In this document: positions 11,362-64,000 of the stretch, in pieces
Numbering within the stretch: the first letter of the stretch is position 1
Layout: the number at the start of each line of letters is the position of its first letter
Origin: Zygnema circumcarinatum SAG 698-1b
Taxonomy: Eukaryota; Plantae; Zygnematophyceae
NCBI GenBank assembly: GCA_037447605.1
Contig: CM074811.1
Location: 2,294,001 to 2,358,000 of the forward strand
Reading direction: 5' to 3'
DNA: 64,000 bases
Notes under the pieces: model-generated
What the model was told of the DNA's origin: nothing
Database searches by the model: none
Seen by the model: the letters and a program-made list of their open reading frames with translations, nothing else
Program-made: the position numbers and the translations under genes

Positions 11362-11582
11362 GTACCTCTGTTTCTATGTGCCGGCGAACCAGAATGCCGT
11401 ACATATATGTACGACTATTTGCCACACCGTACGGTATGTACCATACATTCGTACGGATGGTAGGAAAAACTACAGTACCGTATTGTACGGAATGTCTGCC
11501 GTACATCACCAACCATTCCGTACCGACCGTGCTGTACGGGTGAGTGGGGGCGTTGCCGGAGCTGTGCCGAGGTGCTCGTACT
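11362..11582. promoter_or_regulatory. GTAC/CGTAC-rich tract in the divergent promoter between the PRAT gene and ZFPL1
   Basis: 12 GTAC cores counted by eye in about 220 bp. Confidence 0.5.
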
Positions 11583-11856
11583 CCTGCTCCGACTGCTGCT
11601 GCTGCTGCTGCTGCTCTAGTTTGTTCTGGGTGCAGCGCATTCCCCTGCGTGCGGCATTCCATTGTAGCGCTGCCATGCGAGAGGAGAGAGGAGGCTGGAA
11701 GGGTGGAAGCTGTCGCAGTCAGGAGCAGGGGTTGCTGTGCCTTCTATTTATTGCAGATAAAGGGATTTCGGTGTTAGATTAGGAGGGAAGAGGAAGGAGT
11801 ATTGTCAGAGAGGCGCAACAGGTGGCGGTAGAGGCTGGTGACTCTGGCGCTTCCAG

Positions 11857-14800: not shown

Positions 14801-15392
14801 GAATGAATTGTTTGAGAGCCTTTGTATGAGCATTCTTATAAACTCACCCTGTGCTAATCTGTCTCACATATGGGTGGGAGTGGTGGTCTGCAAATAACAG
14901 GTACTTTGTACACGCAACTGCTGCGACATGTAGCCCCATTTTGGGGCTCTGCAATCCAAGTTCTACCAGTAACAGCCCCTCAACGGAAAGATGATAGGGA
15001 GTCCAACTTGGCAGAAGATGGAGTGGAGGGACGTTGGAGACGCCGCACTCAACAATCTCGCCGGCCTGCTGTAGACCCGCGCAAACTATTGCTGGTGGTA
15101 GCTATCACGTGAGATGGGCCGAGCCTTCTTACCCTCAGCGTTACTTAGATGGATGCGGGGGGGTGGGAAATCAATTCCAGACGAGCAAAGTCGTTTATGC
15201 AGGCCATGAATTTTTAGCTCCCATTCATTACCAACTTGCTGTAACTTTTGAAGGACATAGAGTGAGCAGCCTGAGCTGATGCTCTTTGAAACGTTGTGCA
15301 GGGCCTGTCTTGCAACGATGATGCTCCTGTACTTCCGCCTGGCCCAGGCTTCCCTTGCGAGCAGCACAGTACAAGTTGGTCAAGAGCGCTAA
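11857..15392 (+). CDS. ZFPL1: Zinc finger protein-like 1 (B-box-like plus RING/PHD-like fingers, C-terminal TM), 403 aa. Exons: 11857-11880, 12047-12127, 12371-12488, 12756-12850, 13226-13297, 13467-13823, 14317-14482, 14901-15108, 15302-15392
   Basis: MVVCKCRK|ATKLYCFVHKIPLCLDCVCSPEHAICV|VGQYSEWVNDGDYDWPPKC...TAPAGYTCPAC...VDPRKLLLVVAITACLATMMLLYFRLA. Nine exons are in frame (1212 nt). Confidence 0.92.
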
Positions 15393-16021
15393 TAGGTGTG
15401 TGGGGGAGAGATCGGACGTATTTAGTGAAGTTGCTTCTTAAAGAGCCGGCTGTGTGCTGTGAATATGTAAGCGAAAGACTGTAAACAAAACTATATCAAG
15501 ATATCGTTTGTTCCTTAGGGACTGGAGGGGACTCTGGCAGCTTTGCAACTGTTGCAGCACATTGTGATAGGCGGGGAAACATTTCAACTGAACAACGATG
15601 CCTGGTTGTTCTTGTTCATCATTTTTGTATTTCTGAATGCCGGCTGTTTTTGCTTGCTGACTCAAGCAAGTTCATAGAGTCGACATAGCGTTGATTAAAA
15701 ATTGTCGCTTCCTTTAGGGACCTCGCCGGGGCCGTGTGGGCCGCACCTCACATGGGTCTCCTCGTGTTCAGTTGCTTAGCAAACAAGAGGCCTCGTCAAG
15801 CGGGAGTGATCCACATGAGACTGGCTAAGCTGCTGTAGTAAGCTGTTAAACAGGGCTCAGCAAGGGAGGTTGACTTAAGGAAACGAGAGAGAAACACACA
15901 TTTGGTCGTCTATATGATGAGCTTTGCTGCATTGAACGAAGGATGTGATTGCCGGCCAGCCATCCACGGCCACGGTGATGGTCACCATGCGAATCAGGGA
16001 TGCTGCTGAGAAAAAAGATTG

Positions 16022-16180
16022 CTATACCAATACCGATACTGATACTGGTATTCACACCAAGATCGGTATAAATACCGGAAACGATAACGGTATCGATACA
16101 TGTACTGGTGTATATCCGATACTATTGTCGATACCTACGTAGATACGATATATCTAATCGTACAAATATCGATACTGGCC
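16022..16180. repeat. Degenerate GATAC/ACCGAT hexamer-like tandem repeat upstream of the PEBP gene
   Basis: Repeated gatact/cgatac/atacc units read directly. Confidence 0.55.
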
Positions 16181-16385
16181 GATGGCCACCGGATTTCTTT
16201 GACAGGCGGAATCCCAGTTGTCCCCGCAGTAATGACGTCATACTACCGTAGTCTGCGTCATAGATCCAGATTTCCAGACTTCAGTAACTGCCACTTGGAA
16301 TGCGAGCCCTCCCCCGCATGCCGCCACGCGGCTGCTCCGCGCTCGTCCTCGCGACGCCAGCTGGCGCCCGGCATGCCACCGGCTG

Positions 16386-16405
16386 ACGTGGCACCCTTGC
16401 ACGTG
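16386..16405 (+). promoter_or_regulatory. ABRE (ACGTGGC, 16386-16392) plus G-box (CACGTG, 16400-16405) upstream of the MFT-like gene
   Basis: Exact matches to the canonical bZIP/bHLH elements; TGACGTCA also occurs near 16233. Confidence 0.5.
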
Positions 16406-16546
16406 CGACCGCCCTCGCCCCGGCCCGCGGCCATGGCGGGGAGGCTGCACGCGCTCTCGCCCGCTGCGCGGGTTTTAGGGTTAGCGGGCATCGCCTTGGT
16501 GGTCGTGCAGAGCGGCTTTGCGCTGTGGGGAAAGGAGCCGGCAGCC

Positions 16547-18136
16547 ATGGCGAAGTCTCTGGACGCTTTGCAGCTGGGGAGGGTGGTAGGGGATGTAATT
16601 GACTCCTTTAAGCCGCAGCTGGATGTGAGGGTGCAGTACCCTAACAGGAGGGTGAACAATGGAATGGAGCTGAAGCCAAGTGAGGCCGCAGGAGCTCCGC
16701 AGGTGGAGATTGCAGGGATGGCATCGGGAGAGCTGTATACGCTGGTGAGAGAGATTTGAAGATGGCGTGAGATAGTAGTCTATGTGTATGCGGGAAATTT
16801 GGGCGGGAGGTGGAGAGAGTGGGAGTGAATGAGAGGCGTGGGAGAGGGGCATGGAAGAAGTGAAGAGGGGAGCGGGAGATTTGCTGCAGGTGATGGTGGA
16901 CCCCGACGCGCCCAGCCCTAGTGAACCGACTGCAAGGGAGTGGCTGCATTGGTAAGCAGTGCGTTATGATTTAGTTTGATTGTAATAGCATTTTCTAATT
17001 TTATGAATATTGAAGATTGAAGGGATTATCTAGTTGCATGATTTTAGTTCGGAGCAAGGAGGGGCTGGTGAAAGATTCGTGGACCAACAGGTGCAGAGTG
17101 TTAGGTGATGAATAGTAGTCGGATAAATTGAGCAAATTGCCTGCTTTATTTAGCAGCCATGCGGCTGTAGGACTCTTTAACTTCTACGTATAGCTGTAGC
17201 TGGGGCTACTGCTTGAACAGCTCCAGCAAGACTCAGCGAAAGAGAGATAGAGAGAGAGAGGAAGAGGGAGAGATAGAGAGGGAGAGAGAGAAGAGAGTGA
17301 GGGGGAGCTAGAGAAAAGAGACAATAAAAAGAGTTGAGCATTCCCTGAATACTGTCCGCTTTTCCCGCTTTTTCTTGAGAGTCCATGGTTCAGGCAAGCC
17401 GTGATGAAGGCTGGTAAAAGGGGTCCCTCCATAGTTTTCAATTGCAAAGTAGAACCATTTGTGGGTATGTACAGACAGGCCTTTTATTAATGATGTCGTT
17501 GTTTTGCATATGCAGGATTGTGACAGACATTCCTGGAGCGAGCACGGTTCCACTTGCAGGTGCCTTCTTATTCTACCCTCTCCTTCTCCCTTCTGTTCCC
17601 TCTTTCCAATTTCCTTAATCCATCCATGTGTACCCCTCTCACGTTGTCATCTCTTAGTTTACCCTCCTTTTCATCCCTTCTGCCACATTCATTTTCTCCT
17701 TTCTTCTCTAATCGCTTCTTTCCTGGTTCACTCTCCACTGCTTCTCATCTCTTTCTTTCCTTCACTTTTGTTCCTCCGTATCCCCCCCCCCCCATCCACT
17801 TTTTTGTACTGGCTGCATCTCCCCTTTCCCGCTTCTTCTCCTCAGGATACTCCCTTCAATGCTATTGAAGTCAGAGCCAGTCCTTACTGCATGGTGTGCC
17901 TTGTTTCAGGAACCGAAGTTGTCCCATACAATGGTCCCACTCCTCCTGTTGGCATCCATCGCTATGTCTTTGTGCTCTTTCAGCAGAAAGGACTCCTCCA
18001 CGTATTGCCCCCGTCAAGTCGCAGGAATTTTAAAACCCGTCAGTTTGCAAAAGATTACAATCTTGGTCCTCCAGTGGCTGCTGTCTATTTCAACGCCCAA
18101 AAGGAAGGCAGCCAAAATGCTGGCCGGCGCCGGTAG
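16547..18136 (+). CDS. MFT: PEBP family protein, MOTHER OF FT AND TFL1-like, 176 aa from ATG 16547, with a possible 38-aa extension from ATG 16433. Exons: 16547-16744, 16890-16951, 17516-17559, 17910-18136
   Basis: Canonical FT/TFL1/MFT four-exon layout: a 62-bp exon 2 and a 44-bp exon 3 versus the usual 41. Motifs [39 protein letters not shown] and [10 protein letters not shown]. Trp at the FT-Tyr85/TFL1-His88 position is MFT-like. Confidence 0.9.
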
Positions 18137-18394
18137 GAGCTCCCTGTCAAGGGACAGGAATTATCCTTAGATTTTGCGAACTGTAAGCACATTGGCACAC
18201 ATGTACATAGGCACTTTCTTCATCGATGTTTAGGGGGGTGTTGGAAAAAGCCCCATGTTCTACTTGTACTATATCTGGTACAATAAAGGACCCTGTCCAC
18301 GGCTTGAGGAATTGTTTTTGGCTGTTGGTGTTGTAATAAACAGAAAAGTGTTTTAGATTTTGGTCATCCAGGTTTGTGCTTAATTCGAGCTATT

Positions 18395-18639
18395 AGGGCA
18401 TGTCAGACTTCACAAAATTGAACAAAAAAAGCTTCGTCAGAAATATTGAATTGACTCCTCGATGTCCCCAGAGTAATAGGGGGAGTCAGACCTTGACCAT
18501 CGCTTACGAAATTCCCGAATTCCTTATACTAAAAGTCACTTGGATGGTCAAGATTTGACTCCCCCTAATCGTTTTGGTTTAAAACTGACGAAAGTTTTCC
18601 CTTCATTAATTCTGACGATTTTTAAGTCTGACATGCCCT
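18395..18639. mobile_element. 245-bp MITE (non-autonomous DNA transposon) with 16-bp perfect TIRs
   Basis: AGGGCATGTCAGACTT...AAGTCTGACATGCCCT, flanked by ATT on both sides (alternatively a TA TSD with 15-bp TIRs). An internal inverted pair at 18477-18501 and 18543-18567 matches at 23/25. Confidence 0.85.
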
Positions 18640-19337
18640 ATTGAAAGAGTTTGTGGAGCGTATGGGCTCGCCTCCTTGTCTTCTTTGATCCCACCTGTTA
18701 GAAAGGGAAAGATTTACTTTTCCGTTGCACAAAAAACCTTAGCCCAATGTGCATGGACCAATCACAGTCCTCTGTCACACGCGGCAACCTGTTGTTGGTA
18801 CTGACAGACACCAAACACTCACAGGGGGCGGCGCATATTTCAAAAGTCTGAAGCCTTATTTGCTGAAAGAGCTACTGATTCTAAAAAATGCCCAAACGTG
18901 CGACGAAACGTTTTTGTAAGGTGGCAATCCGAGAATGTGAATTGACTTTTCAAGAGATCGGCGTGAATAATCGACACAACACTACAACTCATGCGGGCGA
19001 TAAATAATATCTACTGTACCTCTTTTCCACTCTTGAGTGGGTTCTACCTAAAGCTATAGACATCCTCCCAGGTCCGCTCCAACAGCAGCTGCCTCCGACT
19101 CCACTAGAAACTGGCGCTTTATTCTCTCCCCGTGACTTCTGTTCTAGTGGGGACTAAACTACGGAAAAACACCACAAAGCTTCAGTATCTGCAATGACGA
19201 CCTAAAATAACTCTCAAGCAATTACAGTACCCTCTAAAGTACCCCCTTCGACGCAAGCAGCTCTCCCAATTATCTTCCAGAGTACTGCTGTTGCTGCTGC
19301 TGCCGCCAATGCAATCCCCAACCCTAACCCGCCCACG

Positions 19338-28711: not shown

Positions 28712-29704
28712 TATGACTGGAGCAGGCAGCTGACGGCCAGCTGCGGAAGGATATGCAAGTCCTTTAAGTAATGCCTGCGGAAGAGTTTTCAGGCGTGATT
28801 CTGGTAATTTTGTGAAAAGGGAAGCGAAAAAGACATGTACGGTCCAGGTATCTTAAGGAGAGTAGAAGAGATTCCAAAGCCATCCCTCAATTGTCTACGC
28901 AGCAAAATGTATGATCCAAGTGTGTCCATTCCCCTCTTCAAGCGTCTTTACCCAGCCCTTCGCTCTACAGAGACATGAAAAGATTGAAGACTGCAGTTTT
29001 TCCAAACAATGTGCCAATCCTCAAGTTTCAACGCTCCACTCGAAATGCTCTGCCGCACATGGACACGCCCAAACTCTACTTCCTCCTTCTCGAATTGCCT
29101 TACATTGCCACCAACCCTATCCGCAGCCCTGCCATCAGCTCCCGAGTTCGAAATGCCGATCGAACCCTTCCTTACTGAGTTACGGCAACCTAACAACTCC
29201 GGCCCGCAGACAGAGCCGGGCCGGGCCGGCGAGCGAGGAGTCTCCTGTTTGTGGCTGGCCGGCCGGCTGTACCGCCCGCTCGCCTGCAAGGGCCCGCCCA
29301 CCCACGCCCACCTTTCTCCCCCCCCCCGGTTGGTGCCCCTTCCCTCCCTCACCTGCACAGCCTGTACTGCTCGACAGCCATGTAATGTGATGTGATGGGA
29401 TGCGATGCGATGGGATGGGATGGGATTGGATGTGCCAAAGCTGCCATGTGTAAGTAACATGTCACTTGCCGAGCCCATCATGCCATGCCATGCCCTGCCA
29501 GATGTGACATGCGGATCACGATGGACAAGATGATGCCATGTCATACCATGCCAGTGTCGCTCTCGTACGCATACCGTTGTGCTGTACTCGTGGGAAGGTG
29601 GAGGGGCCAATTCGACGTTACCGTACCGTACGGCCGACCTCCACGGGAGTACAAATGGATCATGATCTGACGGCGCTCGCCGCGCCACGTATCGCTCTAG
29701 CTTT

Positions 29705-29883
29705 GGACCGTTGCGTGGCCCCCCGCAAAGGCCAAGTCATCATCCGTACAAGGCCGACATCCTACCGTTGAGAGCTTAAGGACACACTTCAAGGCCGTAC
29801 AAATACCGTACCGTACGGCACAGCACGGAAGGGGAAGGCCGGCGGGCTTCCCGGGGCGTCCATTTGAATTTTTTGGCGCGGGA
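29705..29883 (+). promoter_or_regulatory. Cell-cycle cis-elements upstream of NDC80: two AACGG (MSA-core) sites on the - strand plus adjacent TTTGAA (29863-29868) and TTTTGGCGCG (29871-29880)
   Basis: Motifs read directly. They match the MYB3R MSA core, the CHR/TCX hexamer and the E2F consensus, which fits a mitotic kinetochore gene. Confidence 0.5.
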
Positions 29884-34232: not shown

Positions 34233-35536
34233 TTGCTTCTTCACATCAGCAAATCGTGAGGCATTAAATATGTACATACGTCCTGGAGAGGTATAATAAA
34301 GTTAGTGGAACATGCAGCTAGAATCTGGAAGAGGCTATGCAGTCTGTAATGTAGAAGTGGAGGTGCGCTACGGCTCCTCGCACGGTTTAGCGTACTACCA
34401 AGTTCAAGCAAAGTAACCAAGTAGCATGCCAACAAGCAGAAAGGGGGAGATGGAGACAGTGGAAGAGAGCGAGAGACACATGTGGGTTGATAACTGCCGT
34501 TAGCTATCGGAGCACTTGTCCAAGGAGATGACACGGAGCATTGTCGCTTCAAATCACCTGGAGATCTGGCTTGGCGTGGCTGCCTATCGTCGGAGTTGTC
34601 TGAGCCGTCTGGGAAGCTTCTCTATTTTTACAAAGACACTGCTCCTGGATTGGCTGACTTTGTCACTTTATCGGCTGAGGAATTGGCTCCTTAGTACCCT
34701 GGTAGAGAGAAACATCTCATTGGCTCATGCAGTTGCTGCAGTACAACCACTTGGCCAAGCACCCACAGTGGTATGCACGCTTCCTTCACATATGCTTTGT
34801 CCCTTCTCCACCTACTTGTCTCTCAATGACTCAACCTCCGCCAATCATGCGCCATTGTTGCTGAGGATAGCATTCGACAATCCACACACAATTGACGGAA
34901 CTACCCATAACAGTTGGGTCAATGTGCGATTCTTTGCGAGTTCAAAACTCTGAAGATTCACAATGTAATAATAGTTCGTATGTCATACATGCGCAAGCAG
35001 CAGTCCAACGTGCCCGTCCAGTTATCTAATCTTTAGCACTGCATTGCTCGTCGTGGCTCCCAGGACCTCTGCCACCCACCAACTCGCCAGGCGTCAGCAC
35101 TCTCCCTCAGTCAAGCCTCAAGACCGGCCATTGCACTGCCCCATTTCTACGCTCCTTCCAACGTCACCTCCCGCCGTCCGCCCACTGCCGAATGGCCGTT
35201 CTGTCGCCCTCCCGTCAACGGCCAATGCTGCCGGCCGTCACTTTTGGCGCTTCATCCCCGCCAAGCCGTCGCCGGCCGGCGCCCTCTTGGCGTTGCCGAC
35301 CAGGGCCGTACACGGGGCCAAAGCCTCCACTAGACCTCCGTACGATTCGTACCATGATTGGAGGCCGTACGGCGTACGGCGGCCGTCTTGCAGCGCGGGG
35401 GGCGGCGCCTCTTACGAGCCGCCCGCCCTGCGCGCTGCGTGCAGGGGAAGGGAGGGAGGGACACGTGGCAGGTCCTGCAGGGCAGCGCAGCGCTCTTGTC
35501 AAAAGCTCTCTTTCTCTCTCTCTCTCCTGCGCCAGG

Positions 35537-49699: not shown

Positions 49700-50285
49700 T
49701 GCGAGCCTCGCTCGATAAAGTGAATATTACTTTAGCAGATGGTCCGGACAGTACGGTGTGGTCTGTTCTGGACCGCCCCATCGCGCCTTGTGGAACATAG
49801 ATTTCATGGTCAATGTTGATGTTCCAACTCGCTTGTCGTTTTGTCGCTGTCGTTGTTGTTGTTGTTGTTGCGAGCGACTGCAAGTTGAAGTGTTGACCTT
49901 ATGGCGGCGACGCCAAGGATGTACACAGAAACGAGCCGATACCCGTATGTAGAAGCGAAATGACATATGACCAAAAGACTAAGGACTGCCTAGGGTATGT
50001 TGACGCCCCATGCTGTTGTTCAAGCCCCCACACCATCAGTTTTTTTCAACCCAGGTTTAGCAGGATGAAAAAAAACACTCAAACGTTAATCAAACGACTC
50101 CTTTCTGGCGTAGAACTCGGCGTAAAGCCGCTCTGCTTGAGCCGACTACGAGCTGGGAGCGAATGCATTCTACTTTCTCCCCCGCGTTCCCTGTCGCCCT
50201 CGCCCTCTGCCCTCTTTTTGTTTCCCCGTCTCCCACTCTATTCCCCTCCTCTCCCTCCTCACTGTCCCCACTTCCCTCCCTACCG

Positions 50286-50650
50286 ATCTGCGAGGACAAG
50301 GGCAGTGCCTGCCCTGTGTGGGAGGACGTGGAGGGCATGGAGGGGGCCCTTGTGGTGAATTTGGGGGACATGCTCGAGCGCTGGAGCAACGGACTGTTCC
50401 GCTCCACGCTCCAACCAGAAAGCTATTCCGTTCCGTTTTACTTTGAGCCCAACTTTGACTGCGTCGTCGAATGCCTCCCGAGGTGTTGCGACGACAAAAC
50501 TCCTCCCAAGTATCAACGCGATCTCATGCCTTCTTTGTACAATGTGGTTAGCGTCGTGGGTGTATGGCCTGTCCTTCGTGTGGACGCGATGGTCATGAGG
50601 CTCATGGCTGGTCAATGTTCTAGTAAGTGCCCATTGACGTTCACAACCTA
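50286..50650 (+). pseudogene. 3' fragment of a 2OG-Fe(II) dioxygenase (outer copy), inactivated
   Basis: ICEDKGSACPVWEDVEGMEGALVVNLGDMLERWSNGLFRSTLQPESYSVPFYFEPNFDC. The HRV iron-ligand segment is deleted, the acceptor reads taccg versus tacag at 59298, and no upstream exons were found. Confidence 0.8.
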
Positions 50651-51505
50651 ATGTAGGTCATAAAAGGGGCAATTTTTTCATAATGTATTGTTGCTGTGCT
50701 GTGGCTCTAGCATCCTTCTCAATGTCCTTACTGCTCCTTTCCTTGGCCTGCAGATGGCCTCCTACCACCAGCGGGCAGCAACTGCTCAACATGTACCCTG
50801 CGACTCACACAGGATTTCATGGGCCAGAGGAAGAGACATAGGCACATAGGCATGGGCGGTTTCGGGGCAGAGGCGGCTAACCAATCAGTAAGAAAAAAAA
50901 TCTGACACTCGAGTGTGTATTTGAACTATTCACCCTTCAGATGCGATCAGAAGCTGACAGCTTTTCAAAATCTGAAGGGTGCTCAGACCCCCCTCTGAAC
51001 AGAGGAACGAGGGATGACATGATTGCGAGGTGTACGTTATTGTGAGTTTAACAACACCCACATGCTTTGACGGATTTCTCGACAACCACAAGATGTCGAC
51101 TTGTCGGCAAGTGCCGCTTCTTGTTTCCATGTACAATGTCGTGCACAAACGTCGGCATGTAAAAATGTAGGGGGTGTGCGCGCGTTCTTCATAAGGGCAA
51201 ACCTGAACTTGAGCCCCTCAGAACACTCGACATGCTCTCCTTTCCCATCAACTCTATTCAGACCTTCAGCAATTTACAAAAGCTGCCACCCCCCTCCCCA
51301 CTGAAAAAAGGAGCAAATATAACTTAACCCTACGCCCCAAAACTCATCCTTTTGTCCGTCCATCCGTCCATCGATCCATCCATCCCCCCTTATTGCCCAT
51401 CTCTAACAAAAACTTGAGCCCAAGTCTGCCTTGCTGTTAAAACAACACCGTCAACAAGAACTTGCGCCAACATGGGTCGCATGCCCCCTCCCTCCCTCGC
51501 CCGTC

Positions 51506-51945
51506 CTAGCACGTCGCCGAGTACACCCCTTTTCTCACTTTGACCTTGCAGCCGATCCTTGTGACCAGGCCCTGCAGGGGGTACGCGGGCCCCGTCAGGA
51601 CCGTGGACAGCGCCGGACAGCCGTTGACGTACGCGCCGGAAAGCGTCGCCACGACGTTGGTCCCGTCGTACGGACCGACCGTCGGGCCGCCGCTCATGCC
51701 GCCCTCGACCGAGACGTCCTGGCACAGTATGGAGCTGGAGAACTGGTTGCAACCGAGAGTGACGGCTTTTGACGTCACATCGTACACGAGGCTGACGCCA
51801 TCGTTCGTAACAGCGGGGTACCCAAAATTGGCGCGTGGGTCGGAGCCATTCGGAGCGCTCCACGTGTACGTCTGTCCAGGGAGGGCGCTCTTGAGCTTGA
51901 CGACCGCGAGATCTGAGCCGTTCAAAAGCGTGCTCTGCCACGACG
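51506..51945 (-). CDS. 3' part of a further copy of the active serine protease (B'), cut by the assembly gap at 51946-51955
   Basis: Identical by eye to 60511-60950, including GSDLAVVKL and GGMSGGP. Confidence 0.8.
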
Positions 51946-51955
51946 NNNNNNNNNN

Positions 51956-53435
51956 GTCGAATGCCTCCCGAGGTGTTGCGACGACAAAACTCCTCCCAAG
52001 TATCAACGCGATCTCATGCCTTCTTTGTACAATGTGGTTAGCGTCGTGGGTGTATGGCCTGTCCTTCGTGTGGACGCGATGGTCATGAGGCTCATGGCTG
52101 GTCAATGTTCTAGTAAGTGCCCATTGACGTTCACAACCTAATGTAGGTCATAAAAGGGGCAATTTTTTCATAATGTATTGTTGCTGTGCTGTGGCTCTAG
52201 CATCCTTCTCAATGTCCTTACTGCTCCTTTCCTTGGCCTGCAGATGGCCTCCTACCACCAGCGGGCAGCAACTGCTCAACATGTACCCTGCGACTCACAC
52301 AGGATTTCATGGGCCAGAGGAAGAGACATAGGCACATAGGCATGGGCGGTTTCGGGGCAGAGGCGGCTAACCAATCAGTAAGAAAAAAAATCTGACACTC
52401 GAGTGTGTATTTGAACTATTCACCCTTCAGATGCGATCAGAAGCTGACAGCTTTTCAAAATCTGAAGGGTGCTCAGACCCCCCTCTGAACAGAGGAACGA
52501 GGGATGACATGATTGCGAGGTGTACGTTATTGTGAGTTTAACAACACCCACATGCTTTGACGGATTTCTCGACAACCACAAGATGTCGACTTGTCGGCAA
52601 GTGCCGCTTCTTGTTTCCATGTACAATGTCGTGCACAAACGTCGGCATGTAAAAATGTAGGGGGTGTGCGCGCGTTCTTCATAAGGGCAAACCTGAACTT
52701 GAGCCCCTCAGAACACTCGACATGCTCTCCTTTCCCATCAACTCTATTCAGACCTTCAGCAATTTACAAAAGCTGCCACCCCCCTCCCCACTGAAAAAAG
52801 GAGCAAATATAACTTAACCCTACGCCCCAAAACTCATCCTTTTGTCCGTCCATCCGTCCATCGATCCATCCATCCCCCCTTATTGCCCATCTCTAACAAA
52901 AACTTGAGCCCAAGTCTGCCTTGCTGTTAAAACAACACCGTCAACAAGAACTTGCGCCAACATGGGTCGCATGCCCCCTCCCTCCCTCGCCCGTCCTAGC
53001 ACGTCGCCGAGTACACCCCTTTTCTCACTTTGACCTTGCAGCCGATCCTTGTGACCAGGCCCTGCAGGGGGTACGCGGGCCCCGTCAGGACCGTGGACAG
53101 CGCCGGACAGCCGTTGACGTACGCGCCGGAAAGCGTCGCCACGACGTTGGTCCCGTCGTACGGACCGACCGTCGGGCCGCCGCTCATGCCGCCCTCGACC
53201 GAGACGTCCTGGCACAGTATGGAGCTGGAGAACTGGTTGCAACCGAGAGTGACGGCTTTTGACGTCACATCGTACACGAGGCTGACGCCATCGTTCGTAA
53301 CAGCGGGGTACCCAAAATTGGCGCGTGGGTCGGAGCCATTCGGAGCGCTCCACGTGTACGTCTGTCCAGGGAGGGCGCTCTTGAGCTTGACGACCGCGAG
53401 ATCTGAGCCGTTCAAAAGCGTGCTCTGCCACGACG
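51956..53435. repeat. Exact 1480-bp copy of 50466-51945 between two 10-N gaps (51946-51955, 53436-53445); probable assembly artefact
   Basis: Constant offset of 1490, identical ORF translations, and both copies end at the same base before the N runs. Confidence 0.85.
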
Positions 53436-53597
53436 NNNNNNNNNNAAGAGAGGGAGGAGAGGGAGGGGCGGGCGGGCGGGCGGGTGAGAGCGCGAGAGAG
53501 GGATGTGAGGGAGTGGGAGTGGGAGCTGACAAGTGCCAGTTCCGTAGAGAGTGCCTCTTAACCTTGGAAAGTGGAAACGCAAACACATGAGCAGGCC

Positions 53598-54620
53598 GTA
53601 CGACACCGACGAAATCTTGTACGTACGAGAAGGCGAAATTCGTGACGGCGAAATTTGACCACAAAATGACAGATTGGAATCTTTTGGCGGTTGAAAATTG
53701 CCGGAGGGTCATCGGCCGACAAACAAGCAAACGACGAACAAAGCTTTCAAGATTCGGATCTTGACCTTCGCAACCGGTCCCTAATTGTACCGCCAGAGGA
53801 CAAAGTGTTGTACGGACGATGTCGGCGTCTTGTCCGCGTCAACGCCATTCAAAGCGTCAGTCTGTGGCGTGCAATGGTGACGCGTGGCCAGCATTTTGGA
53901 CCGTGCGTTAGGCTTTTTGGCTTTCCCTAAAATCGACTAGAGTAGCGGACGTCGATTAAACCTCCCCCGAAATTTCGACATGAAAGGTACTCTTTCAGGA
54001 GCACTCTCCCATTCTTTGGGCGTCCGCTAAGCGGCAGTCCGGCCTCGGGGGGATGCGGCGTTGGTCCCAAGGCGCCGATGGCCATGAGAGCGCAGGGCCT
54101 TGTAGGAGAATTCCAATTGAAATTTCTAAAAATGGTCAGGCCGTCTTATAGAAACACTTTTAGAATGGCCGGACAATTGTACGCATGTACGGACATAAGG
54201 CGTAACTGTACGACCAGTGCGAGCGCAAATCAAGTTGAAATTCATTGGTCGTACGGTCATGTGAAAAGTGTTCTATAACTCTGAAACTTTTAGGCATTAG
54301 AACGTTCTAATTCTGAAATCTAAAACTTTGAAAGCAGCTTGTACGGAAAAATGTAAGTTGTTAGTCCGTACACGTCCTTGGCCTGTACCGCACCAACCAG
54401 TGCTGCGCATCGATTATGTCCGCACACGCCAAACTTGTCGTGCAGGCTTCGTAAAGACATGCATATGTGTCGATTTACAAGGCCCAGGTAGTGTTCGTAC
54501 CGTTCCGTACGCTTCTTTTCTTTGCTTTTCTTGTCCTTTCGTGAACAGCAAGGAAATGTACAAAACCATACTGCAAAGTACGGACAAGCTTTGATCGGCG
54601 GCGGCTCGATCCTATAAAGT
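53598..54620. promoter_or_regulatory. Divergent promoter of the protease pair: GTAC-rich, with a TATA box (CCTATAAAG, ~54611-54619) before protease A
   Basis: 17 GTAC cores counted in about 1 kb; the TATA lies about 120 bp upstream of ATG 54737. The same sequence occurs at 62468-63490 between protease B and A'. Confidence 0.6.
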
Positions 54621-54736
54621 GAGCGTCGTGTCGAGGTCCAAGCAACGCGCTCCGCTTCCCATCCTCCTCCCTCTCGCTCTATCTTTCTATCTCGCTCTCG
54701 CTCTCTGTCTCTCTCTCGCGTCTCTCCGCAGCAGCC

Positions 54737-55705
54737 ATGGCCGTCCTCCTCACCCTCCTGCCCCTCCTCCTTGCGGCCCTGCTTCCTGCGGCAGCGGCGG
54801 GCTCTCTTCCAACCGTCACAGTGGCCGCCTCGAAGGACGTTTCTCTTTCTGCCAAAGCTATAGGTCAATTGTCCCTCTCGGGCAACATGTCCCTCCCCCT
54901 CGCCGTCAGCAAGGGCGGCGTGGCTCCCAAGGGCTTCCTCACCTGCAACACGGGCTCCCCTCCATGGCCGGCCTCCCTCGTCGTGCCGGGCTTCGAGGAG
55001 ACCGGCCTCGCCTCCGGCGTGGTTCTGCTCTACTTCACATTCGCCTCCACCGGCCGCACATTCCGCGCCTGCTCGGGGACTCTTATTGCGCCTACTCTCG
55101 TGGCTACCGCCGCTTCGTGCGTCTATGACACGGACGTGAACGTGTGGCAGATCAACTCAACCGTCACCGTGACCGCATTCACAAGGAGGAACGGAGTGAG
55201 CGATGCCTCCTACTCCACCGCCTTCGTCTCCACCGCTTCGATCTTCAATGGCTTCGTCAACGCGGCCTCGTTTGTGAAAACACTCCTTGACGGCAGCGAC
55301 ATCGCCGTTGTGAAGCTGAGTTCGCCCCTCATCGGACAAGCCTTCCAGTGGACCAGCGCCGTGCCAGCCCCATTTCCGCGCGCTGCTTTTGGGTATCCCG
55401 CCCAGACAGTCGACGGCAAGAGCATCGTCTACGACGTGACGGTGCTGGCCCTCTCGCGCGGCTGCCAGGGCTACTCCGCGAACGTTCTGTGCGAGGACTT
55501 GTCGGTGGAGGGCGGGATGGGAGGCGGCCCTCTCGTCACTCTGACCCCCAGTCTGCTCGCTGTGGGGCTGCTGTCCGCCGCTGCCACGTCCAGCTGTCCG
55601 GCGTACTTCACTGCTCTTGTGGGGACCTACTCGTTGGAGGTGCTCGCTCGCAGTGTGGGGTGCAATGTGTTCAACAACAACGGCATCTTCTCCGCTTTGT
55701 GCTGA
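54737..55705 (+). CDS. Secreted trypsin-fold (clan PA/S1) serine protease homologue, catalytically dead (protein A), 322 aa, intronless
   Basis: Signal peptide MAVLLTLLPLLLAALLPAAAA. CSGTLIAPTLVATAASC has His->Ser, GSDIAVVKL keeps the Asp, and EGGMGGGP has Ser->Gly. FGYP motif and 8 Cys are shared with protein B. Confidence 0.85.
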   Translation: MAVLLTLLPLLLAALLPAAAAGSLPTVTVAASKDVSLSAKAIGQLSLSGNMSLPLAVSKGGVAPKGFLTCNTGSPPWPASLVVPGFEETGLASGVVLLYFTFASTGRTFRACSGTLIAPTLVATAASCVYDTDVNVWQINSTVTVTAFTRRNGVSDASYSTAFVSTASIFNGFVNAASFVKTLLDGSDIAVVKLSSPLIGQAFQWTSAVPAPFPRAAFGYPAQTVDGKSIVYDVTVLALSRGCQGYSANVLCEDLSVEGGMGGGPLVTLTPSLLAVGLLSAAATSSCPAYFTALVGTYSLEVLARSVGCNVFNNNGIFSALC

Positions 55706-56479
55706 GCGTCGGGCGATGTGTGGACAGCACGCGTGCAACGTTTTTGCGCCCTTGGTCTCGAGTGTTTTGAACTCTTAAGAGGCTAAGAGTGGAAGTTATG
55801 CGGTGTGCTGTTTCTCGGAGTGGGTGGACTTGCAAATACGATTTGTCGACTTTCTATCAAAGATAGAAAGCCGGGACTAGTGGGTAATATTAGGTACTTG
55901 CAGGGGAACTTGGTGATTAGGAAATAGGCAATGCTGGTATCTCGGCAATAAATTTGTATGTGTATTTGGGTTTAGGAGAGACTTTTGGGCATTACTTGTC
56001 GGATCTCTTCTCTGATGAAAAGAAAAGTCAGTTTACCCTGTGACATTTGGAATGCGAGCTGCTGGAGGGTTTCCATTGATGCTATTTTGGAATCAAGTCA
56101 CTTCGTTTACCTGTTAATCCGATTCAACGATGGGTGACCGTGACACATGCATGTGCATTCACTTATTTTCATCCAATGGGAGTGTCAGCAATCTTGAGAG
56201 CAGCGCTTCTCAGCCTCTCTCAATGTCACGGGCGTCGGAGCTCAAATGCGCGGCTCAAGCGAGGCCGCCGAGCGATGCAGCGCTTGCCAAAATGGCCCAG
56301 AATCTCTAATCGCAAGAATCGGACGGCCCAGATTGGTCGGGCGGCGTCGCCATGCAGCGCATGTCCGTGTGACCGTGAAACTGTCGTCGCAGTGCCAATT
56401 CACGCGCCTCCGTTTCCCTGAACTCGCGGACATTCCGTACAGCCCCTCCTGTTCGTACAATCCTACCCGTAGGGCCGTG

Positions 56480-56513
56480 GCCCGTAGCCCGTAGCCCGTA
56501 GCCCGTAGCCCGT
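56480..56513 (+). repeat. (GCCCGTA)n heptamer tandem, about 5 units
   Basis: Direct read. Confidence 0.85.
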
Positions 56514-56579
56514 CCTCCATCGCAAAGAATCGTAAACCCGAAATTGGAAATGCCCTTAATCCTAACTTTAATCCCGACC

Positions 56580-58810
56580 ATGGCGGCGGAGCGAAGGCGA
56601 AGGCGGCAGGTCCTCCCATGGATGCGCTCTTCGCAGGTCCTGTGCCGCGCATCCATGGCTGCCAGCGCCGCCTGCAGAAGCACCCTCGTCCAAAGCGTCC
56701 GCCGCGCAGTAGCGAGCCATGGCGGCGCGGAGGAGGGCGGCGGAGCTCGCAGGGTTCAGCAAATTAGGGTTCGGGCTGCCCGGGGAGGGGCTGGGCGCCA
56801 CGTGGCCGGCCGCCCTGAACCGCCACCTGTGGTGTGAGGAGGGGCCATTCCGCGATCATGATGATGGGCATGGCTGTGGGGGGGAAGCCATGGGTGCAGA
56901 ACGGGAGAAGGAAGGACTAGCGGGAGGAGGAGGAGGAGAAAACATATGGAACCGCTGTGTTTAATGGAAAGTTGATCCTGGAGGCTTTGAAGGGAGCAGT
57001 GAAAAATCACGGAGGGAAATTTCTCGAAGATGTTCCTCGAACTTTGTCGGGAGGTGGGGAGAGAGACGGAGGAGAGAGGAGAGAGAGGAGAGAGAGGGAA
57101 AGACAAAGAGAGGGGGAGAAGGATGAGGGGGTGATCCAAGATGGAGAAGGGCCATCATATCGGAAAAACTTGGTTGTTGTTCCTCCTGGTCAGGTTGGCA
57201 ACTTCTCGCCCTCCCTGCCTCTCTTTTTCTCTCTCGCTTTGCCTCTGTTCTCTCTCTCAAAAAATTGCTTCTAAGGCCTTAATTGATGTGACGAATTTAA
57301 GACATGCAGCGGGAGATGGGTATAGAAGCAAGGAGGCTGTGAATAGGGAGGTAGAGGAGAGACTGAATGCAGGGTGTGAGAGGAGAGTCGAGTCAGGACA
57401 ATGTTTCCCTGCGAATTTGAATTGGGAGGCTGCGGGAAGAAGAAATGTGAGAGGAGATTTCAAGCTTAGGAAGCTATCGGAGTTGTGTTTGGAGAGAGAG
57501 GAGGCAGAGGAACGAGGGGAGGGAGAGGGGAGTGAAGGGGGAGAGGAGCGAGAAAGAAACGAGGAGGGAGAGGGGAGAAATGAGAACGAGGAGCGAGAGA
57601 AGAGACGGGAGGGAAAGTGGAGACATGAAATAGAGGAGCGAAAGAGACGGGCGGAGGGAGCGGGGAGTGATGAGAGGGAGGAGAGAGAAGAAGAAAAGTG
57701 CAGATGGAAAGGAGATATGGAGCTCAGAAAGAATGATTATGTGGAGGGTGATGAAATAAATGGAGAGAAGTGGGAAGAGTATGTAGGTTTGCAGAATTTT
57801 GAAGAAGAGAATGAAGGAGCAAGGGAGGTGGGAGACTCGGAAGAGGGAGAGAAAAATGAATGTGAGGAGCTGAGTTTTGAAGTTAACGGAGGTCAGTCTG
57901 CATGGAACACGGCGGGCCGCACAACGGATTTCCGTTGGGAGGAGGATGGAGAAGTAAAGCAACATAGAAGTACAGTGAGCGGAGCGACAGCTAGAGTGGC
58001 AGATATTTTACGGCAATTAGATGAAAACATGAGAGAGAGAACAGAGGAGAGAGGGAGAGAGGGAGAGAGGGAGGCGGATGATGACTTTGAAGTGAGAGGA
58101 AGTGAAAGGCTTTCTTGGGACGGGAGATTGAGTGAAAGGGAGGAGAAAGGAAGGAGAGAATGTTCAGTTCCGTAATAGGCAACAACATGCAACGGAGGAG
58201 AAAGCGGCTGACGAGAAGGAGAGAGAGAGACGGTTGGGAGAAGGGAATGAAAGAGACGGAACTGAGGGCATAGTACAGGGGAATGTAAATAATTCGACAA
58301 TTTTGGAAAATGGGGAAGATGATATTGTAGAGCTTCATGAAAGTAGTTTTGTTTGTATTAGTATGGGAAGGGAGCAATTGGGGTATAAAGGGAGTATTTC
58401 AAAAAGGCAGCAATAAAAATGGAACGCCAAAATCTCGTCGATTAATTACAGATTTTTTCCGTTTTCCGCTGGGCGAATGCAGGCAATCAATCGCAGGGAA
58501 AGGGGGGAGGAGGAAGGGAGCGTGTAAACCCTAAGAGTGGGAGATGGAGAGGGACAAGGAGAGGAGATGTTGGAGACGGGGAGGCCACTGGAGAAGAGAG
58601 GGGAGCGGTAGAGGAGGAAAATAGAGATAGAGCTCGAGGTGGGAGTGTGAAGTGGAGAAGGAGAGGGAGAGGGAGTGGGAGAGGGAGAGGGAGGGCGAGA
58701 GCTGCTAGAGGGGGCCAGTCGAGGGATGGAGCGAATCTTTGGGAAATTAGTCCCGGAACCAAGTTTCGAGTGGTAAACCCAAAAACCAGCGAATCGAAAA
58801 CCTTCAAATG
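56580..58810 (+). pseudogene. Degenerate gene with two BRCT-like segments and a long Glu/Arg-rich tail (nibrin/NBS1-like by eye); frameshifts and an in-frame stop
   Basis: Paired motifs LVQSVRRAVASHGG and ILEALKGAVKNHGG, plus IMMMGMAVGGKPWV and NLVVVPPGQ. A phase-consistent intron (57194-57275) leads into the E-rich ORF. TAG at 56918 and several frame changes. Similarity was not computed. Confidence 0.35.
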
Positions 58811-59298
58811 ACCAGTTTTTCAGATTCTAAGAATAAAATCCAATTTCATATATACCTCTATATCTCAATATATCTCATTTTTTATCTTTTGGGGAGACAT
58901 GCTCGAGTGGGAGTGTGATCTGCGTCTTGAGATGTCAGCTTTTGTTTCTGATCTGTTGCTTTTTGTGAACACACTGATTCTAGACTTGGATGGTTGTTTC
59001 TCCCTCGTTTGCCTGTTCCCTCTCTCTCGTCCTCTCCCTCGCGGTCCCCCTCCCTCCCTCCATCTCTCTGGCGCTCCCCTTTCTCTCCCGCTCCCGCTCT
59101 CGTCGCCCTCGCCCTGCCCATTATCTCTCCCCATTTCCCCATCTCCCTCCACACCTTTCCTCTCCCTCTCTTTCTCCTTCTCCCTCGTCCTCGTCCACGT
59201 TTGCTCAATCTCCCTCCATTCCTCCCCCTTTTCGCCCGTCTCCTTCTCTCTTCCCCTCCTCCTCTTCCTCCTCTGTATCCCCACTTCCCTCCCTACAG

Positions 59299-59576
59299 AT
59301 CTGCAAGGACAAGGGCAGTGCCTGCCCTGTGTGGGAGGACGTGGAGGGCATGGAGGGGGACCTTGTGGTGAATTTGGGGGACATGCTCGAGCGTTGGAGC
59401 AACGGCCTGTTTCGTTCAACGCTCCACCGTGTCTGCACACGCGGAACGGAATGGAACGCTATTCCGTTCCGTTTTTCTTTGAGCCCAACTTTGAGTGCGT
59501 CGTCGAATGCCTCCCGACGTGTTGCGACGACAAAAATCCTCCCACGTATCAACGCGTTCTCATGCCTTATTTGTAA
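59299..59576 (+). pseudogene. 3' exon fragment of a 2OG-Fe(II) dioxygenase (inner copy) with a 1-nt frameshift
   Basis: Acceptor ctacag|ICKDKGSACPVWEDVEGMEGDLVVNLGDMLERWSNGLFRSTLHRVCTR, then a frame change near 59441-59446 to NGMERYSVPFFFEPNFECVVECLP. No exons for the N-terminus or HxD motif were found upstream. Confidence 0.75.
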
Positions 59577-60510
59577 AATGTGGTTAGGGTTGTGGTGGTA
59601 TGACCTGTTCTTTGTGTGGACACAATGGTTATGTGGCTCATGGCTGATCACTGTTCTAGTAAGTTGCCATTGAAGTTCACAACCTAATGTATGCTGGGGC
59701 TCTAGCATCCTTCTCTATGTCCTTAGATGGCCTCCCACCAGCAGCGGATGCGGGGCAGCATCTGCTCAACATGTACCCCGCGACTCGCACAGGCTTGCAT
59801 GGGCCGGAGGAGGAGGCATAGGCGCACAGGCAGGGGCAGATGCAGGGCAGAGGGGGCTCACCAATTAGTTAGGAAAAAAAATCTGAAATTCGAGTGTGTA
59901 TTTTTGCTATTCATCCTTCAGATGCGATCAGAGGCTGACAGCTTTTCAAAATCTGAGGGGTGTTAAGGGCCCCCTCTGGACATGGGTACGAGGGACGCAC
60001 ATGGCTGCAAGGTGTACATTATTGTATGTTTAGCAACTTCACATTGCAAACATGCTCATGCTTTGACGGATTTCTCGACAACCACAAGATGTCGACTTGT
60101 CGGCAAGTGCCGCTTCTTGTTTCCATTCACAATGTCGTGAACAAACGTCGGCATGTAAAAATGTAGGGGGTGTGCGCGCGTTCTTCATAAGGGCAAACCT
60201 GAACTTGAGCCCCTCAGAACACTCGACATGCTCTCCTTTCCCATCAACTCTATTCAGACCTTCAGCAATTTACAAAAGCTGCCCCTCCCCCCCCCGCCCC
60301 CCCCCCCTTCCCACTGAAAAAAGCAGGAAATATAACTTAACCCTACGCCCCAAAACTCACCCTTTTGTCCGTCCGTCCGTCCATCGATCCATCCATCCCC
60401 CCTTATTGCCCATCTCTAACAAAAACTTGAGCCCGAGTCTGCCTTGCTGTTAAAACAACACCGTGAACAAGAAGTTGCGCCAACATGGGTCTCATGCCCC
60501 CTCGCCCGTC

Positions 60511-62157
60511 CTAGCACGTCGCCGAGTACACCCCTTTTCTCACTTTGACCTTGCAGCCGATCCTTGTGACCAGGCCCTGCAGGGGGTACGCGGGCCCCGT
60601 CAGGACCGTGGACAGCGCCGGACAGCCGTTGACGTACGCGCCGGAAAGCGTCGCCACGACGTTGGTCCCGTCGTACGGACCGACCGTCGGGCCGCCGCTC
60701 ATGCCGCCCTCGACCGAGACGTCCTGGCACAGTATGGAGCTGGAGAACTGGTTGCAACCGAGAGTGACGGCTTTTGACGTCACATCGTACACGAGGCTGA
60801 CGCCATCGTTCGTAACAGCGGGGTACCCAAAATTGGCGCGTGGGTCGGAGCCATTCGGAGCGCTCCACGTGTACGTCTGTCCAGGGAGGGCGCTCTTGAG
60901 CTTGACGACCGCGAGATCTGAGCCGTTCAAAAGCGTGCTCTGCCACGACGGGGCCTGCTGGAACTCCGTGTAGATCTTGACTTCATCATAGTACGCTCCA
61001 AAATACGTGTCGTTATCGCCGGCGCCGTTCACTTGGACGAATGCTGCCAAATTGACGGATCCACCGACCATCCACTTGTCTTTGTCGGTATCGTAAAGAC
61101 AGTGCGCCGCGGTGAGCACGAGAGTGGGCGCAATCATTGCCCCCGAGCACAGGCCGACGGGGCCCGCCCGGGTGACCAGAAGCAATAGGACCACCCCCGA
61201 GCTCAGCCCCGCGTCCTCCAATCCGGGCACCACCCTGGCCGCGGGCAGACCCACGTTGCACGTCGCAAACCCCGCTGGGGCCACACCGCTTTTGGGCTTC
61301 GGGTTCGGCGTGGATCCGCGCAGGATGAACTCGCTGGGGGATCCACCGAACGTGGGTAAACTCATGTACCCGATCAACGGAAGGCCTTTGCGGAGGAGGT
61401 CGATGGGCACTGCCTTCTTGTCCTTCACTATGGGAGCCTTGAAGGAGGAAGTTTCCGGGAAGGTGAGCCCCGCGGATTCTGCCAGCTCCCGGCGTGCCAC
61501 GTGGGACGAAGGCGGTTCCGCACGTGTGGAGGGGATGGAGGTCCCTTCAGGGCGCTCTGGGAGGGATCTGCAGATGCAAAAAATTTAAGAAATTCGAGGT
61601 CAAATATTCATTTAAGATTAACGTTGATACGCTTCGTGCATTGCATTGCCGGAAGGAATCGGGGTGGTTCTATGTATGCACGGAACGCTGAGAATGTTTT
61701 ACTGTCAACAGAACTGACGCCATGTGGCTGATGCGCAATGCAGTTGCTGCAAACGGCGAACAGAACGGAGAACGGAGCGGCGTACATGTGCACGCCGCGG
61801 CCCGCGCGGTCGCGTGACGTGACGCCCTCCCGCCGGCCGCGGTCCGCGCCCTCCGCCCACGAGGAGGCCCCGGACTCTGCGGGGGACAAAGGGCCACGCT
61901 CGAACTCAAACTCAAATTGAAACGCAGACTGAAACTCAAACTGAAACTGGAACTGCAACTGGAACTGAAACTGGAGCTGGAAGATGATGCATATTGCCAC
62001 GTTCCAATGGCTCGGCAGCGTGAATTAGAAGCTGGAGAAGTACACAAAGGAAGGGCGCGCTCTTACCTGCTTCAGGCGCTAGGGCCACCGCGCAGGCGGG
62101 GGCTGAGAGGAGGGCGACGACGAGGCATGCGCGGAGGATGGGAGCGAGGGCGGCCAT
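60511..62157 (-). CDS. Secreted trypsin-fold (clan PA/S1) serine protease with an intact triad (protein B), ~412 aa. Exons: 62157-62067, 61876-61786, 61567-60511
   Basis: Signal peptide MAALAPILRACLVVALLSAPACAVA. Two introns are confined to the signal/pro region (phases 1 and 2 join in frame). CSGAMIAPTLVLTAAHC (His), GSDLAVVKL (Asp) and EGGMSGGP (Ser); FGYP; 8 Cys. Confidence 0.88.
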
Positions 62158-62315
62158 GGCTGCCGCGGGGGGATGAGAGGAGGGGAGGGAGAGAGAGGGG
62201 GGAGAGGGAAGAGAGGGAGGAGAGGGCGAGAGGGAGGGGAGAGAAGTAGGGGAGGGGAGGGAGGAGAGGGATGAGAGGGTGAGAGGGAGGATCGGGAGAG
62301 AGGGGGGGAAGAAGG

Positions 62316-64000
62316 AAGAGAGGGAGGAGAGGGAGGGGCGGGCGGGCGGGCGGGTGAGAGCGCGAGAGAGGGATGTGAGGGAGTGGGAGTGGGAGCTGAC
62401 AAGTGCCAGTTCCGTAGAGAGTGCCTCTTAACCTTGGAAAGTGGAAACGCAAACACATGAGCAGGCCGTACGACACCGACGAAATCTTGTACGTACGAGA
62501 AGGCGAAATTCGTGACGGCGAAATTTGACCACAAAATGACAGATTGGAATCTTTTGGCGGTTGAAAATTGCCGGAGGGTCATCGGCCGACAAACAAGCAA
62601 ACGACGAACAAAGCTTTCAAGATTCGGATCTTGACCTTCGCAACCGGTCCCTAATTGTACCGCCAGAGGACAAAGTGTTGTACGGACGATGTCGGCGTCT
62701 TGTCCGCGTCAACGCCATTCAAAGCGTCAGTCTGTGGCGTGCAATGGTGACGCGTGGCCAGCATTTTGGACCGTGCGTTAGGCTTTTTGGCTTTCCCTAA
62801 AATCGACTAGAGTAGCGGACGTCGATTAAACCTCCCCCGAAATTTCGACATGAAAGGTACTCTTTCAGGAGCACTCTCCCATTCTTTGGGCGTCCGCTAA
62901 GCGGCAGTCCGGCCTCGGGGGGATGCGGCGTTGGTCCCAAGGCGCCGATGGCCATGAGAGCGCAGGGCCTTGTAGGAGAATTCCAATTGAAATTTCTAAA
63001 AATGGTCAGGCCGTCTTATAGAAACACTTTTAGAATGGCCGGACAATTGTACGCATGTACGGACATAAGGCGTAACTGTACGACCAGTGCGAGCGCAAAT
63101 CAAGTTGAAATTCATTGGTCGTACGGTCATGTGAAAAGTGTTCTATAACTCTGAAACTTTTAGGCATTAGAACGTTCTAATTCTGAAATCTAAAACTTTG
63201 AAAGCAGCTTGTACGGAAAAATGTAAGTTGTTAGTCCGTACACGTCCTTGGCCTGTACCGCACCAACCAGTGCTGCGCATCGATTATGTCCGCACACGCC
63301 AAACTTGTCGTGCAGGCTTCGTAAAGACATGCATATGTGTCGATTTACAAGGCCCAGGTAGTGTTCGTACCGTTCCGTACGCTTCTTTTCTTTGCTTTTC
63401 TTGTCCTTTCGTGAACAGCAAGGAAATGTACAAAACCATACTGCAAAGTACGGACAAGCTTTGATCGGCGGCGGCTCGATCCTATAAAGTGAGCGTCGTG
63501 TCGAGGTCCAAGCAACGCGCTCCGCTTCCCATCCTCCTCCCTCTCGCTCTATCTTTCTATCTCGCTCTCGCTCTCTGTCTCTCTCTCGCGTCTCTCCGCA
63601 GCAGCCATGGCCGTCCTCCTCACCCTCCTGCCCCTCCTCCTTGCGGCCCTGCTTCCTGCGGCAGCGGCGGGCTCTCTTCCAACCGTCACAGTGGCCGCCT
63701 CGAAGGACGTTTCTCTTTCTGCCAAAGCTATAGGTCAATTGTCCCTCTCGGGCAACATGTCCCTCCCCCTCGCCGTCAGCAAGGGCGGCGTGGCTCCCAA
63801 GGGCTTCCTCACCTGCAACACGGGCTCCCCTCCATGGCCGGCCTCCCTCGTCGTGCCGGGCTTCGAGGAGACCGGCCTCGCCTCCGGCGTGGTTCTGCTC
63901 TACTTCACATTCGCCTCCACCGGCCGCACATTCCGCGCCTGCTCGGGGACTCTTATTGCGCCTACTCTCGTGGCTACCGCCGCTTCGTGCGTCTATGACA
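62316..64000. repeat. Next tandem unit: identical by eye to 53446-55130 (offset 8870)
   Basis: Identical ORFs at a constant offset (53691/62561, 54078/62948, 54320/63190). Confidence 0.9.
63607..64000 (+). CDS. Second copy of the dead protease homologue (A'), truncated by the window end
   Basis: Same sequence as 54737-55130, including the ATAASC His->Ser motif. Confidence 0.85.
   Translation, partial: MAVLLTLLPLLLAALLPAAAAGSLPTVTVAASKDVSLSAKAIGQLSLSGNMSLPLAVSKGGVAPKGFLTCNTGSPPWPASLVVPGFEETGLASGVVLLYFTFASTGRTFRACSGTLIAPTLVATAASCVYD

Follow-up and report, generated by a model that had tools for sequence, protein, structure and literature searches.

The 64,000-nucleotide stretch of the Zygnema circumcarinatum SAG 698-1b genome considered here (the window: positions 2,294,001 to 2,358,000 of contig CM074811.1, assembly GCA_037447605.1) carries two genes, A and B, for paralogous proteins of the trypsin-like (S1) serine protease family. 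Gene A (54737..55705, + strand) is a single-exon open reading frame (ORF) of 322 codons, encoding a signal-like amino terminus and a catalytically dead S1 (trypsin) fold. Gene B lies on the opposite strand and is predicted to have two exons. Exon 1 (62067..62157, −), read from the sequence only, begins with the ATG at 62157 and encodes a 30-codon signal-like peptide, MAALAPILRACLVVALLSAPACA; exon 2 (60511..61556, −) encodes a pro-region and the S1 domain, with residues His133, Asp195, and Ser268. (Numbering follows the 329-residue ORF at 60511-61500 (−), which is without the ATG that carries the signal peptide.) The intron (61557..62066, −; 510 nt, GT..AG, phase 1) is likewise a prediction, read from sequence and reading frames: the GT donor stands at 62066, and the AG ending at 61557 is the sole frame-compatible acceptor. 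The spliced B protein would comprise about 378 residues.

Both genes belong to a tandem repeat. Self-comparison finds 53446-55130 to be 100% identical to 62316-64000, a period of 8,870 bp. The next copy of A, designated A' (63607..64000, +), encodes residues 1-131, including the TAASC motif, and is 100% identical to A up to the point where it ends with the window. One repeat unit contains A (+), a spliced transcript with the remnant of a 2OG oxygenase (+), and B (−). Within one unit, A and B therefore stand tail to tail, 4.8 kb apart with the other transcript between them; B and A' face each other head to head only where one unit meets the next. There, the ATG codons of B (62157, −) and A' (63607, +) diverge across a 1,449-bp intergenic spacer (62158..63606), which has CT-rich leaders on both sides and an identical copy, 53446-54736, upstream of A. 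An initial annotation of this DNA had described just such an arrangement, a divergent pair separated by about 1.45 kb and repeated in tandem.

The A and B proteins are 48% identical over 273 residues (BLASTP, E 2e-67). Eight cysteines are aligned (70/112/128/243/252/287/309/322 in A, 81/118/134/249/258/293/316/329 in B), and four sequence blocks are common to both: GVAPxGFxTCN, SGVVLL, FGYP, and GSD[IL]AVVKL. Pfam family PF00089 (Trypsin; cut-off 20.6 bits) matches A with 40.3 bits (E 4e-10) and B with 35.6 bits (E 1e-8). The B residues H133, D195, and S268 align with invariant or near-invariant family columns, in the correct S1 order, and B is most likely a secreted endopeptidase with an N-terminal pro-region.

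The catalytic positions tell the two proteins apart. B has TAAHC, D195, and GMSGG, whereas A has TAASC, D188, and GMGGG: the catalytic His position of A is Ser127 (codon TCG, 55115..55117, +), the catalytic Ser position is Gly262 (codon GGA, 55520..55522, +), and the triad Asp is retained as D188 in the family alignment. These dead codons are three bases (TCG against CAC) and two bases (GGA against AGC) away from their B counterparts, so the loss of His and Ser in A is old. Within eight residues of the three triad positions, A and B share 35 of 51 residues (69%), compared to 126 of 255 (49%) for the whole domain, and the oxyanion-hole strand SVEGGM-x-GGP of A equals that of B except for the nucleophile. 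A thus has the S1 fold, replacements for both nucleophile and general base, an intact ORF, and representation in RNA, as expected for a pseudoprotease. Alignment and codons together reproduce what the initial annotation had read from the letters: a shared signal-like peptide, eight aligned cysteines, conserved blocks, and triad Asp; and a triad that is kept in B and broken at His and Ser in A, with the ORF and cysteines of the latter intact.

Structure prediction agrees with this assignment. Single-sequence AlphaFold prediction of A gave a mean predicted local distance difference test score (pLDDT) of only 35.5; hence, an alignment of 50 sequences was used. The resulting AlphaFold2 model (pLDDT 83.7; predicted template-modelling score 0.84) has the two-barrel chymotrypsin fold. 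A Foldseek search with this model returned at least 500 PDB matches, and the best 50 listed are all S1 proteases. The top match is the glutamyl endopeptidase 1p3c (template-modelling score 0.74 by target), with animal S1A enzymes close behind. Matches in the AFDB clusters were generic serine proteases only, none of them closer to A.

Structure 1p3c, from Bacillus intermedius, is a V8-like S1B enzyme, and it also provides the best solved-structure sequence match of B (E 0.004), limited to 47 residues in the His-loop region. Like A and B, which have Met there, it is without the Asp194-type zymogen-activation residue before the nucleophile. Unlike them, it has another disulfide pattern (A and B have eight cysteines); identity is about 16%, and the conserved N-terminal CxxGxP...SGVVxL block and the C-terminal extension of A and B also set them apart from 1p3c. 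Assignment to S1B was tested on these grounds: the 1p3c match is weak and partial, and Foldseek ranks S1A and S1B enzymes alike.

Where, then, do A and B belong? Word-indexed protein searches proved nearly blind to their clade, yielding one match with B and three with the family profile. An exhaustive HMMER search with B against 1.84 billion cluster representatives yielded 99 matches at E ≤ 1e-3 and one at E ≤ 1e-30. (One of the HMMER matches, P0013, is a repeat protein and was rejected as a false positive.) Eight relatives carry the clade-specific blocks: P0002, P0003, P0004, P0005, P0006, P0009, P0010, and P0102. P0003 comes from the xanthophyte Tribonema gayanum, and P0004, P0006, P0009, and P0010 come from eukaryotic transcripts of other runs. 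P0002 (L001 122-1417, Logan SRR8128906), encoded on an SRA transcript contig whose run accession turned up in no paper, is the closest relative of B, with 38% identity. Its CT-rich leader resembles the Zygnema leaders, and it may be from the same or a close species. P0002 also has an extra N-terminal Cys-rich stretch that looks, by eye, like a plant leucine-rich-repeat N-terminal cap, for which Pfam made no call at E ≤ 0.01.

The two remaining relatives, P0005 and P0102, lie on metagenome contigs of 42.6 and 56.7 kb, respectively, whose genes are densely packed and apparently intronless. The P0005 contig (L002 1-19642, ENA ERZ27257064 k141_73189) encodes a DNA polymerase B, an RNA polymerase Rpb1 domain, and a D5-type primase, and therefore looks like a giant virus; the P0102 contig is L006 (ERZ25073694 ctg127648). 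Algae and their large DNA viruses may exchange members of this protease clade. Locus scans of viral_contigs with P0005 and of metagenome_contigs with B gave no match, and NCBIfam has no family for A or B. By sequence, A and B represent a rare, uncharacterized clade of family S1, found in algae and in giant-virus-like DNA. A bacterial (V8) origin by horizontal transfer was considered and rejected, the nearest relatives being algal and giant-virus-like. Both His and Ser are kept in every other aligned member of the clade, making A the only row of the alignment without the two.

Expression was evaluated through assembled RNA contigs of four runs (X1, X2, X7, and X8) over 54650-60649, with depth summed over contigs. 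In X2, A and its untranslated regions (UTRs) lie in a span, starting before 54650 and reaching to about 56050, over which the sum is 350,000-816,000. The probable 3' UTR of A (55706..56049, +) has depth above 340,000 throughout, after which depth drops to about 760. Values on the transcript between A and B are 300-760, with 47-79 on its intron, and depth then climbs through 689, 1,290, and 3,550 to 19,235 toward the B 3' end (about 19,000 at 60450-60649). A thereby exceeds B about 25- to 40-fold in X2, and exceeds the neighboring transcript about a thousand-fold. The GT..AG joints and the thousand-fold range of depth indicate that X2 contains RNA. Depths in X1 are much lower, 6-400 for A and 0-54 for B; the remaining runs, X7 and X8, have almost nothing over the entire stretch, neighbor included, and so are uninformative on A and B. 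The initial annotation had let its proposal hang on whether A is expressed, and the very high depth in X2 answers in its favor.

The RNA also reveals a second copy of A, marked by 15 variant positions, about 4% different and present at about half the depth. At codon 127, no variant reaches at least 10% of reads in X1 or X2, and none is listed at codon 262. All expressed A variants are in frame; the sole one-base deletion, at 54725, lies upstream of the ATG. Loose ends of RNA contigs occur near the A start codon, at 54716, 54764, 54780, and 54789. Taken with the deletion at 54725, these ends suggest that the A copies differ in the 5' leader or signal-peptide region.

Is A maintained or decaying? 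In a maximum-likelihood tree, the terminal branches leading to A and B are 0.62 and 0.65, respectively, and identity to outgroup family members is 27-34% for A and 27-38% for B. Very high transcription under some conditions, together with change no faster than that of B, argues that A is a maintained pseudoprotease. We consider it rather probable, judging from these sequence comparisons and contigs, that A is a functional secreted non-catalytic paralog. The initial annotation had likewise taken A for a gene that is not decaying; its intact ORF, its RNA depth, the paired branch lengths, and the absence of any frame-breaking variant bear this out.

Several points weigh against this reading. Depth was added up across many variant contigs, which measures abundance poorly, although the contrast is very large; the kind of run X2 is unrecorded, and conditions are coded. 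High mRNA of a young duplicate is itself no proof of function. The differences between the expressed A copies, eight non-synonymous and seven synonymous, give a ratio of non-synonymous to synonymous polymorphism (pN/pS) of 0.37-0.42, which is suggestive only as a signal of constraint and not significantly below 1 (one-sided binomial calculated by hand, p about 0.07-0.08 for 15 sites). Support for A and B as sisters in the tree is 36-58, so the relative-rate argument from equal branches is approximate. Finally, the signal peptides of both proteins were judged by eye, and the secretion of A, its binding, and the activity of B are read from genes rather than at the protein level.

What might A do? 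The preferred model would be as follows. With Ser in place of the general base His and Gly in place of the nucleophile Ser, A would bind rather than cut. Its signal-like peptide, triad Asp, oxyanion-hole strand, and all eight cysteines are retained; secreted in large excess, A could hold peptide ligands or protease inhibitors in its preserved cleft. A might then serve as a decoy or competitor, either an inhibitor sponge or a substrate trap, in an extracellular pathway of B-type proteases. Alternatively, A might be a stand-alone binding or defense protein, similar to azurocidin. The excess of A over B fits a decoy or competitor, or an independent binder, better than it fits a cofactor or chaperone. 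Both ideas are tentative: that A is a decoy or competitor linked to B is one possibility that falls well short of probable, and that A binds independently is a possibility of the same standing. More doubtful is the fullest version of the decoy idea, an extracellular system of streptophyte algae, unknown to date and made up of a rare S1 protease clade in common with giant-virus-like genomes, in which a strongly induced and tandemly amplified pseudoprotease A would be a decoy or ligand trap for its head-to-head partner B, for example in defense against microbes or in cell-wall remodeling. A location for A in the cell wall or mucilage is speculation.

A different arrangement would have A and B co-transcribed from a shared divergent promoter and joined in a complex where A is the cofactor, chaperone, or activator of B, much like insect serine protease homologues when prophenoloxidase is activated. 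The head-to-head geometry invites this idea, because the 1,449-bp spacer is exactly copied in the next unit; moreover, A and B are both high in X2 and low in X1, and the cleft-forming segments are conserved in A. Going by the geometry, B and A' may share a single promoter. However, the two genes pair head to head only at unit junctions, their relation within a unit being tail to tail across 4.8 kb, and neither protein has a clip domain or other interaction domain. The roughly 25- to 40-fold excess of A is a poor fit to a one-to-one cofactor or to a chaperone resembling a pro-domain, and this weakens two of the options that the initial annotation had named alongside a decoy. Its proposal of co-regulation is possible: A and B are both high in X2 and much lower in X1, but these are only two informative runs, represented by assembled contigs. 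Overall, a complex of this kind seems improbable.

The spacer itself contains 17 GTAC cores, where 5.5 are expected, and eight copies of CCGTAC/GTACGG, where 0.8 are expected from shuffles; these cluster at 62466-63448, often as CCGTACGG. The element CTATAAAG also lies in the spacer, about 120 bp before the A' ATG. Similar GTAC-core clusters occur at 11397-11534, 29621-29813, and 35306-35374, in promoter-like sequences that have no other mutual similarity. GTAC clusters therefore are a general promoter feature and not evidence for co-regulation of A and B, and their candidacy as sites for a specific shared regulator (SBP/CRR1-type) was rejected. They may be a common promoter element of this genome, perhaps an SBP-type site.

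The array raises a separate concern: one A-B locus might have been duplicated by scaffolding around N gaps, leaving an array that is largely an assembly artefact. Two 10-N gaps (51946-51955 and 53436-53445) do interrupt the upstream unit; on either side of the first stands the same 1,480-bp sequence (50466-51945 and 51956-53435, 100% identity), and an exact repeat of 1,685 bp reaches the window end. Because of the gaps and the 1,480-bp duplicate, the copy number and order of units upstream are uncertain, and the duplicate probably is a scaffolding artefact around a collapsed tandem repeat. Other repeat parts, in contrast, are non-identical: 50752-51945 matches 59725-60950 at 91.5%, and 50221-50655 matches 59230-59691 at 86%. 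Since the older units differ, the array is real, with at least two diverged units. The second A variant in RNA, which differs by about 4% and reaches about half the depth, also argues against an artefact. A largely artefactual array is thus distinctly unlikely, a judgment that concerns the array only.

Further copies within the array are partial. A 3' half of B (51506..51945, −) ends in the N gap and is identical to 60511-60950 at 440 of 440 positions; a second B 3' half (52996..53435, −) is its exact duplicate across the gap and possibly a scaffolding artefact. The adjoining 3' flank, 50752-51505 against 59725-60510, is about 92% identical (of 794 aligned columns, 58 are mismatches and 48 are gap positions), and the switch in identity between the B units sits at most about 12 bp from the stop codon. 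For an identical coding half beside a diverged flank, purifying selection alone is a poor account; gene conversion confined to the coding sequence, or a consensus effect of the assembly, is indicated instead. A tblastn search of the window found no further family member besides the A and B copies.

Least probable of all is that A is a recently inactivated duplicate nearing loss, its RNA depth due to an inherited strong promoter and array copies: tandem arrays do give rise to redundant copies, a pN/pS of about 0.4 over 15 differences is not significantly below 1, and contig depth is unreliable as a measure, but the divergence of A from B is old (48% identity, dead codons three and two bases apart), the 322-codon ORF, signal-like peptide, and eight cysteines of A are intact despite that age, the A branch is no longer than the B branch, and the expressed variants stay in frame.

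The transcript between A and B (56573..59935, +) has GT..AG joints at 57190>58480 and 58771>59298 in both X1 and X2. Of a 2OG-Fe(II) oxygenase it encodes only the C-terminal portion, distributed between two frames without any single long ORF. This remnant has the look of a gene fragment that was truncated, was multiplied along with the unit, and continues to be transcribed; 50163-50651 is a diverged copy.

Dead paralogs beside active enzymes are an established pattern elsewhere. Azurocidin (CAP37/HBP), which shares about 45% identity with active paralogs such as elastase, has lost two of three triad residues (PMC4575391); it arose by duplication in the locus of proteinase 3 and elastase (PMC7914634). 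Like A, it is a secreted or granule protein of S1 fold, and it is abundant and acts by binding. Its substitutions presumably are His to Ser and Ser to Gly, as in A. Unlike A, which it matches at fold level only, azurocidin belongs to an animal S1A granule clade, and its locus (AZU1-PRTN3-ELANE) is without a tandem array or a head-to-head promoter. No sign of an antimicrobial or cationic nature is seen in A, whose domain has an isoelectric point of about 5.

The Phytophthora pair XEG1 and XLP1 is closer in arrangement: a secreted enzyme and its non-enzymatic paralog are encoded head to head, and the paralog binds the enzyme's inhibitor, thereby protecting the enzyme (PMC12003678). A and B resemble this pair as a probably active enzyme and a dead paralog standing head to head. 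They differ in that XEG1 and XLP1 are GH12 glycoside hydrolases rather than proteases, and belong to a pathogen that meets an inhibitor from its host.

The inactivated protease paralogues of the scabies mite (SMIPP-S) and the insect serine protease homologues (SPHs) are, like the A/B array, multi-copy dead S1 paralogs alongside active enzymes. (Structure 3h7o, an SMIPP-S protein, is one of the weak PDB matches of B by sequence.) SMIPP-S proteins act in complement inhibition and SPHs as prophenoloxidase cofactors, roles with no evident algal counterpart. Both are animal S1A proteins, unlike A, and SPHs carry clip domains. Pfam comparison at E values up to 1 detected only Trypsin and Trypsin_2 in A and B, with no clip domain in either; the analogy to clip-domain SPHs drawn in the initial annotation therefore fails on architecture.

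The claim that no such module had been described in green plants has held: a literature search for an algal or plant protease/pseudoprotease pair found none. To our knowledge, secreted trypsin-fold proteases are essentially absent from land-plant apoplasts. A and B stand out in three respects: RNA of the dead copy is very abundant and varies with conditions, the unit has been amplified in tandem, and giant-virus-like DNA carries members of the same clade. Pseudoenzymes that survive by binding are a recurring, under-sampled theme. If A is simply an abundant binder, it would still be useful, marking a strongly induced physiological state in a way that is easy to test. If instead A traps ligands or serves as a decoy, the logic of paralogous decoys and of azurocidin would reach the algal relatives of land plants, an unannotated protease clade of algae and giant-virus-like DNA would gain a function, and the green lineage would have its first decoy pair of protease and pseudoprotease.

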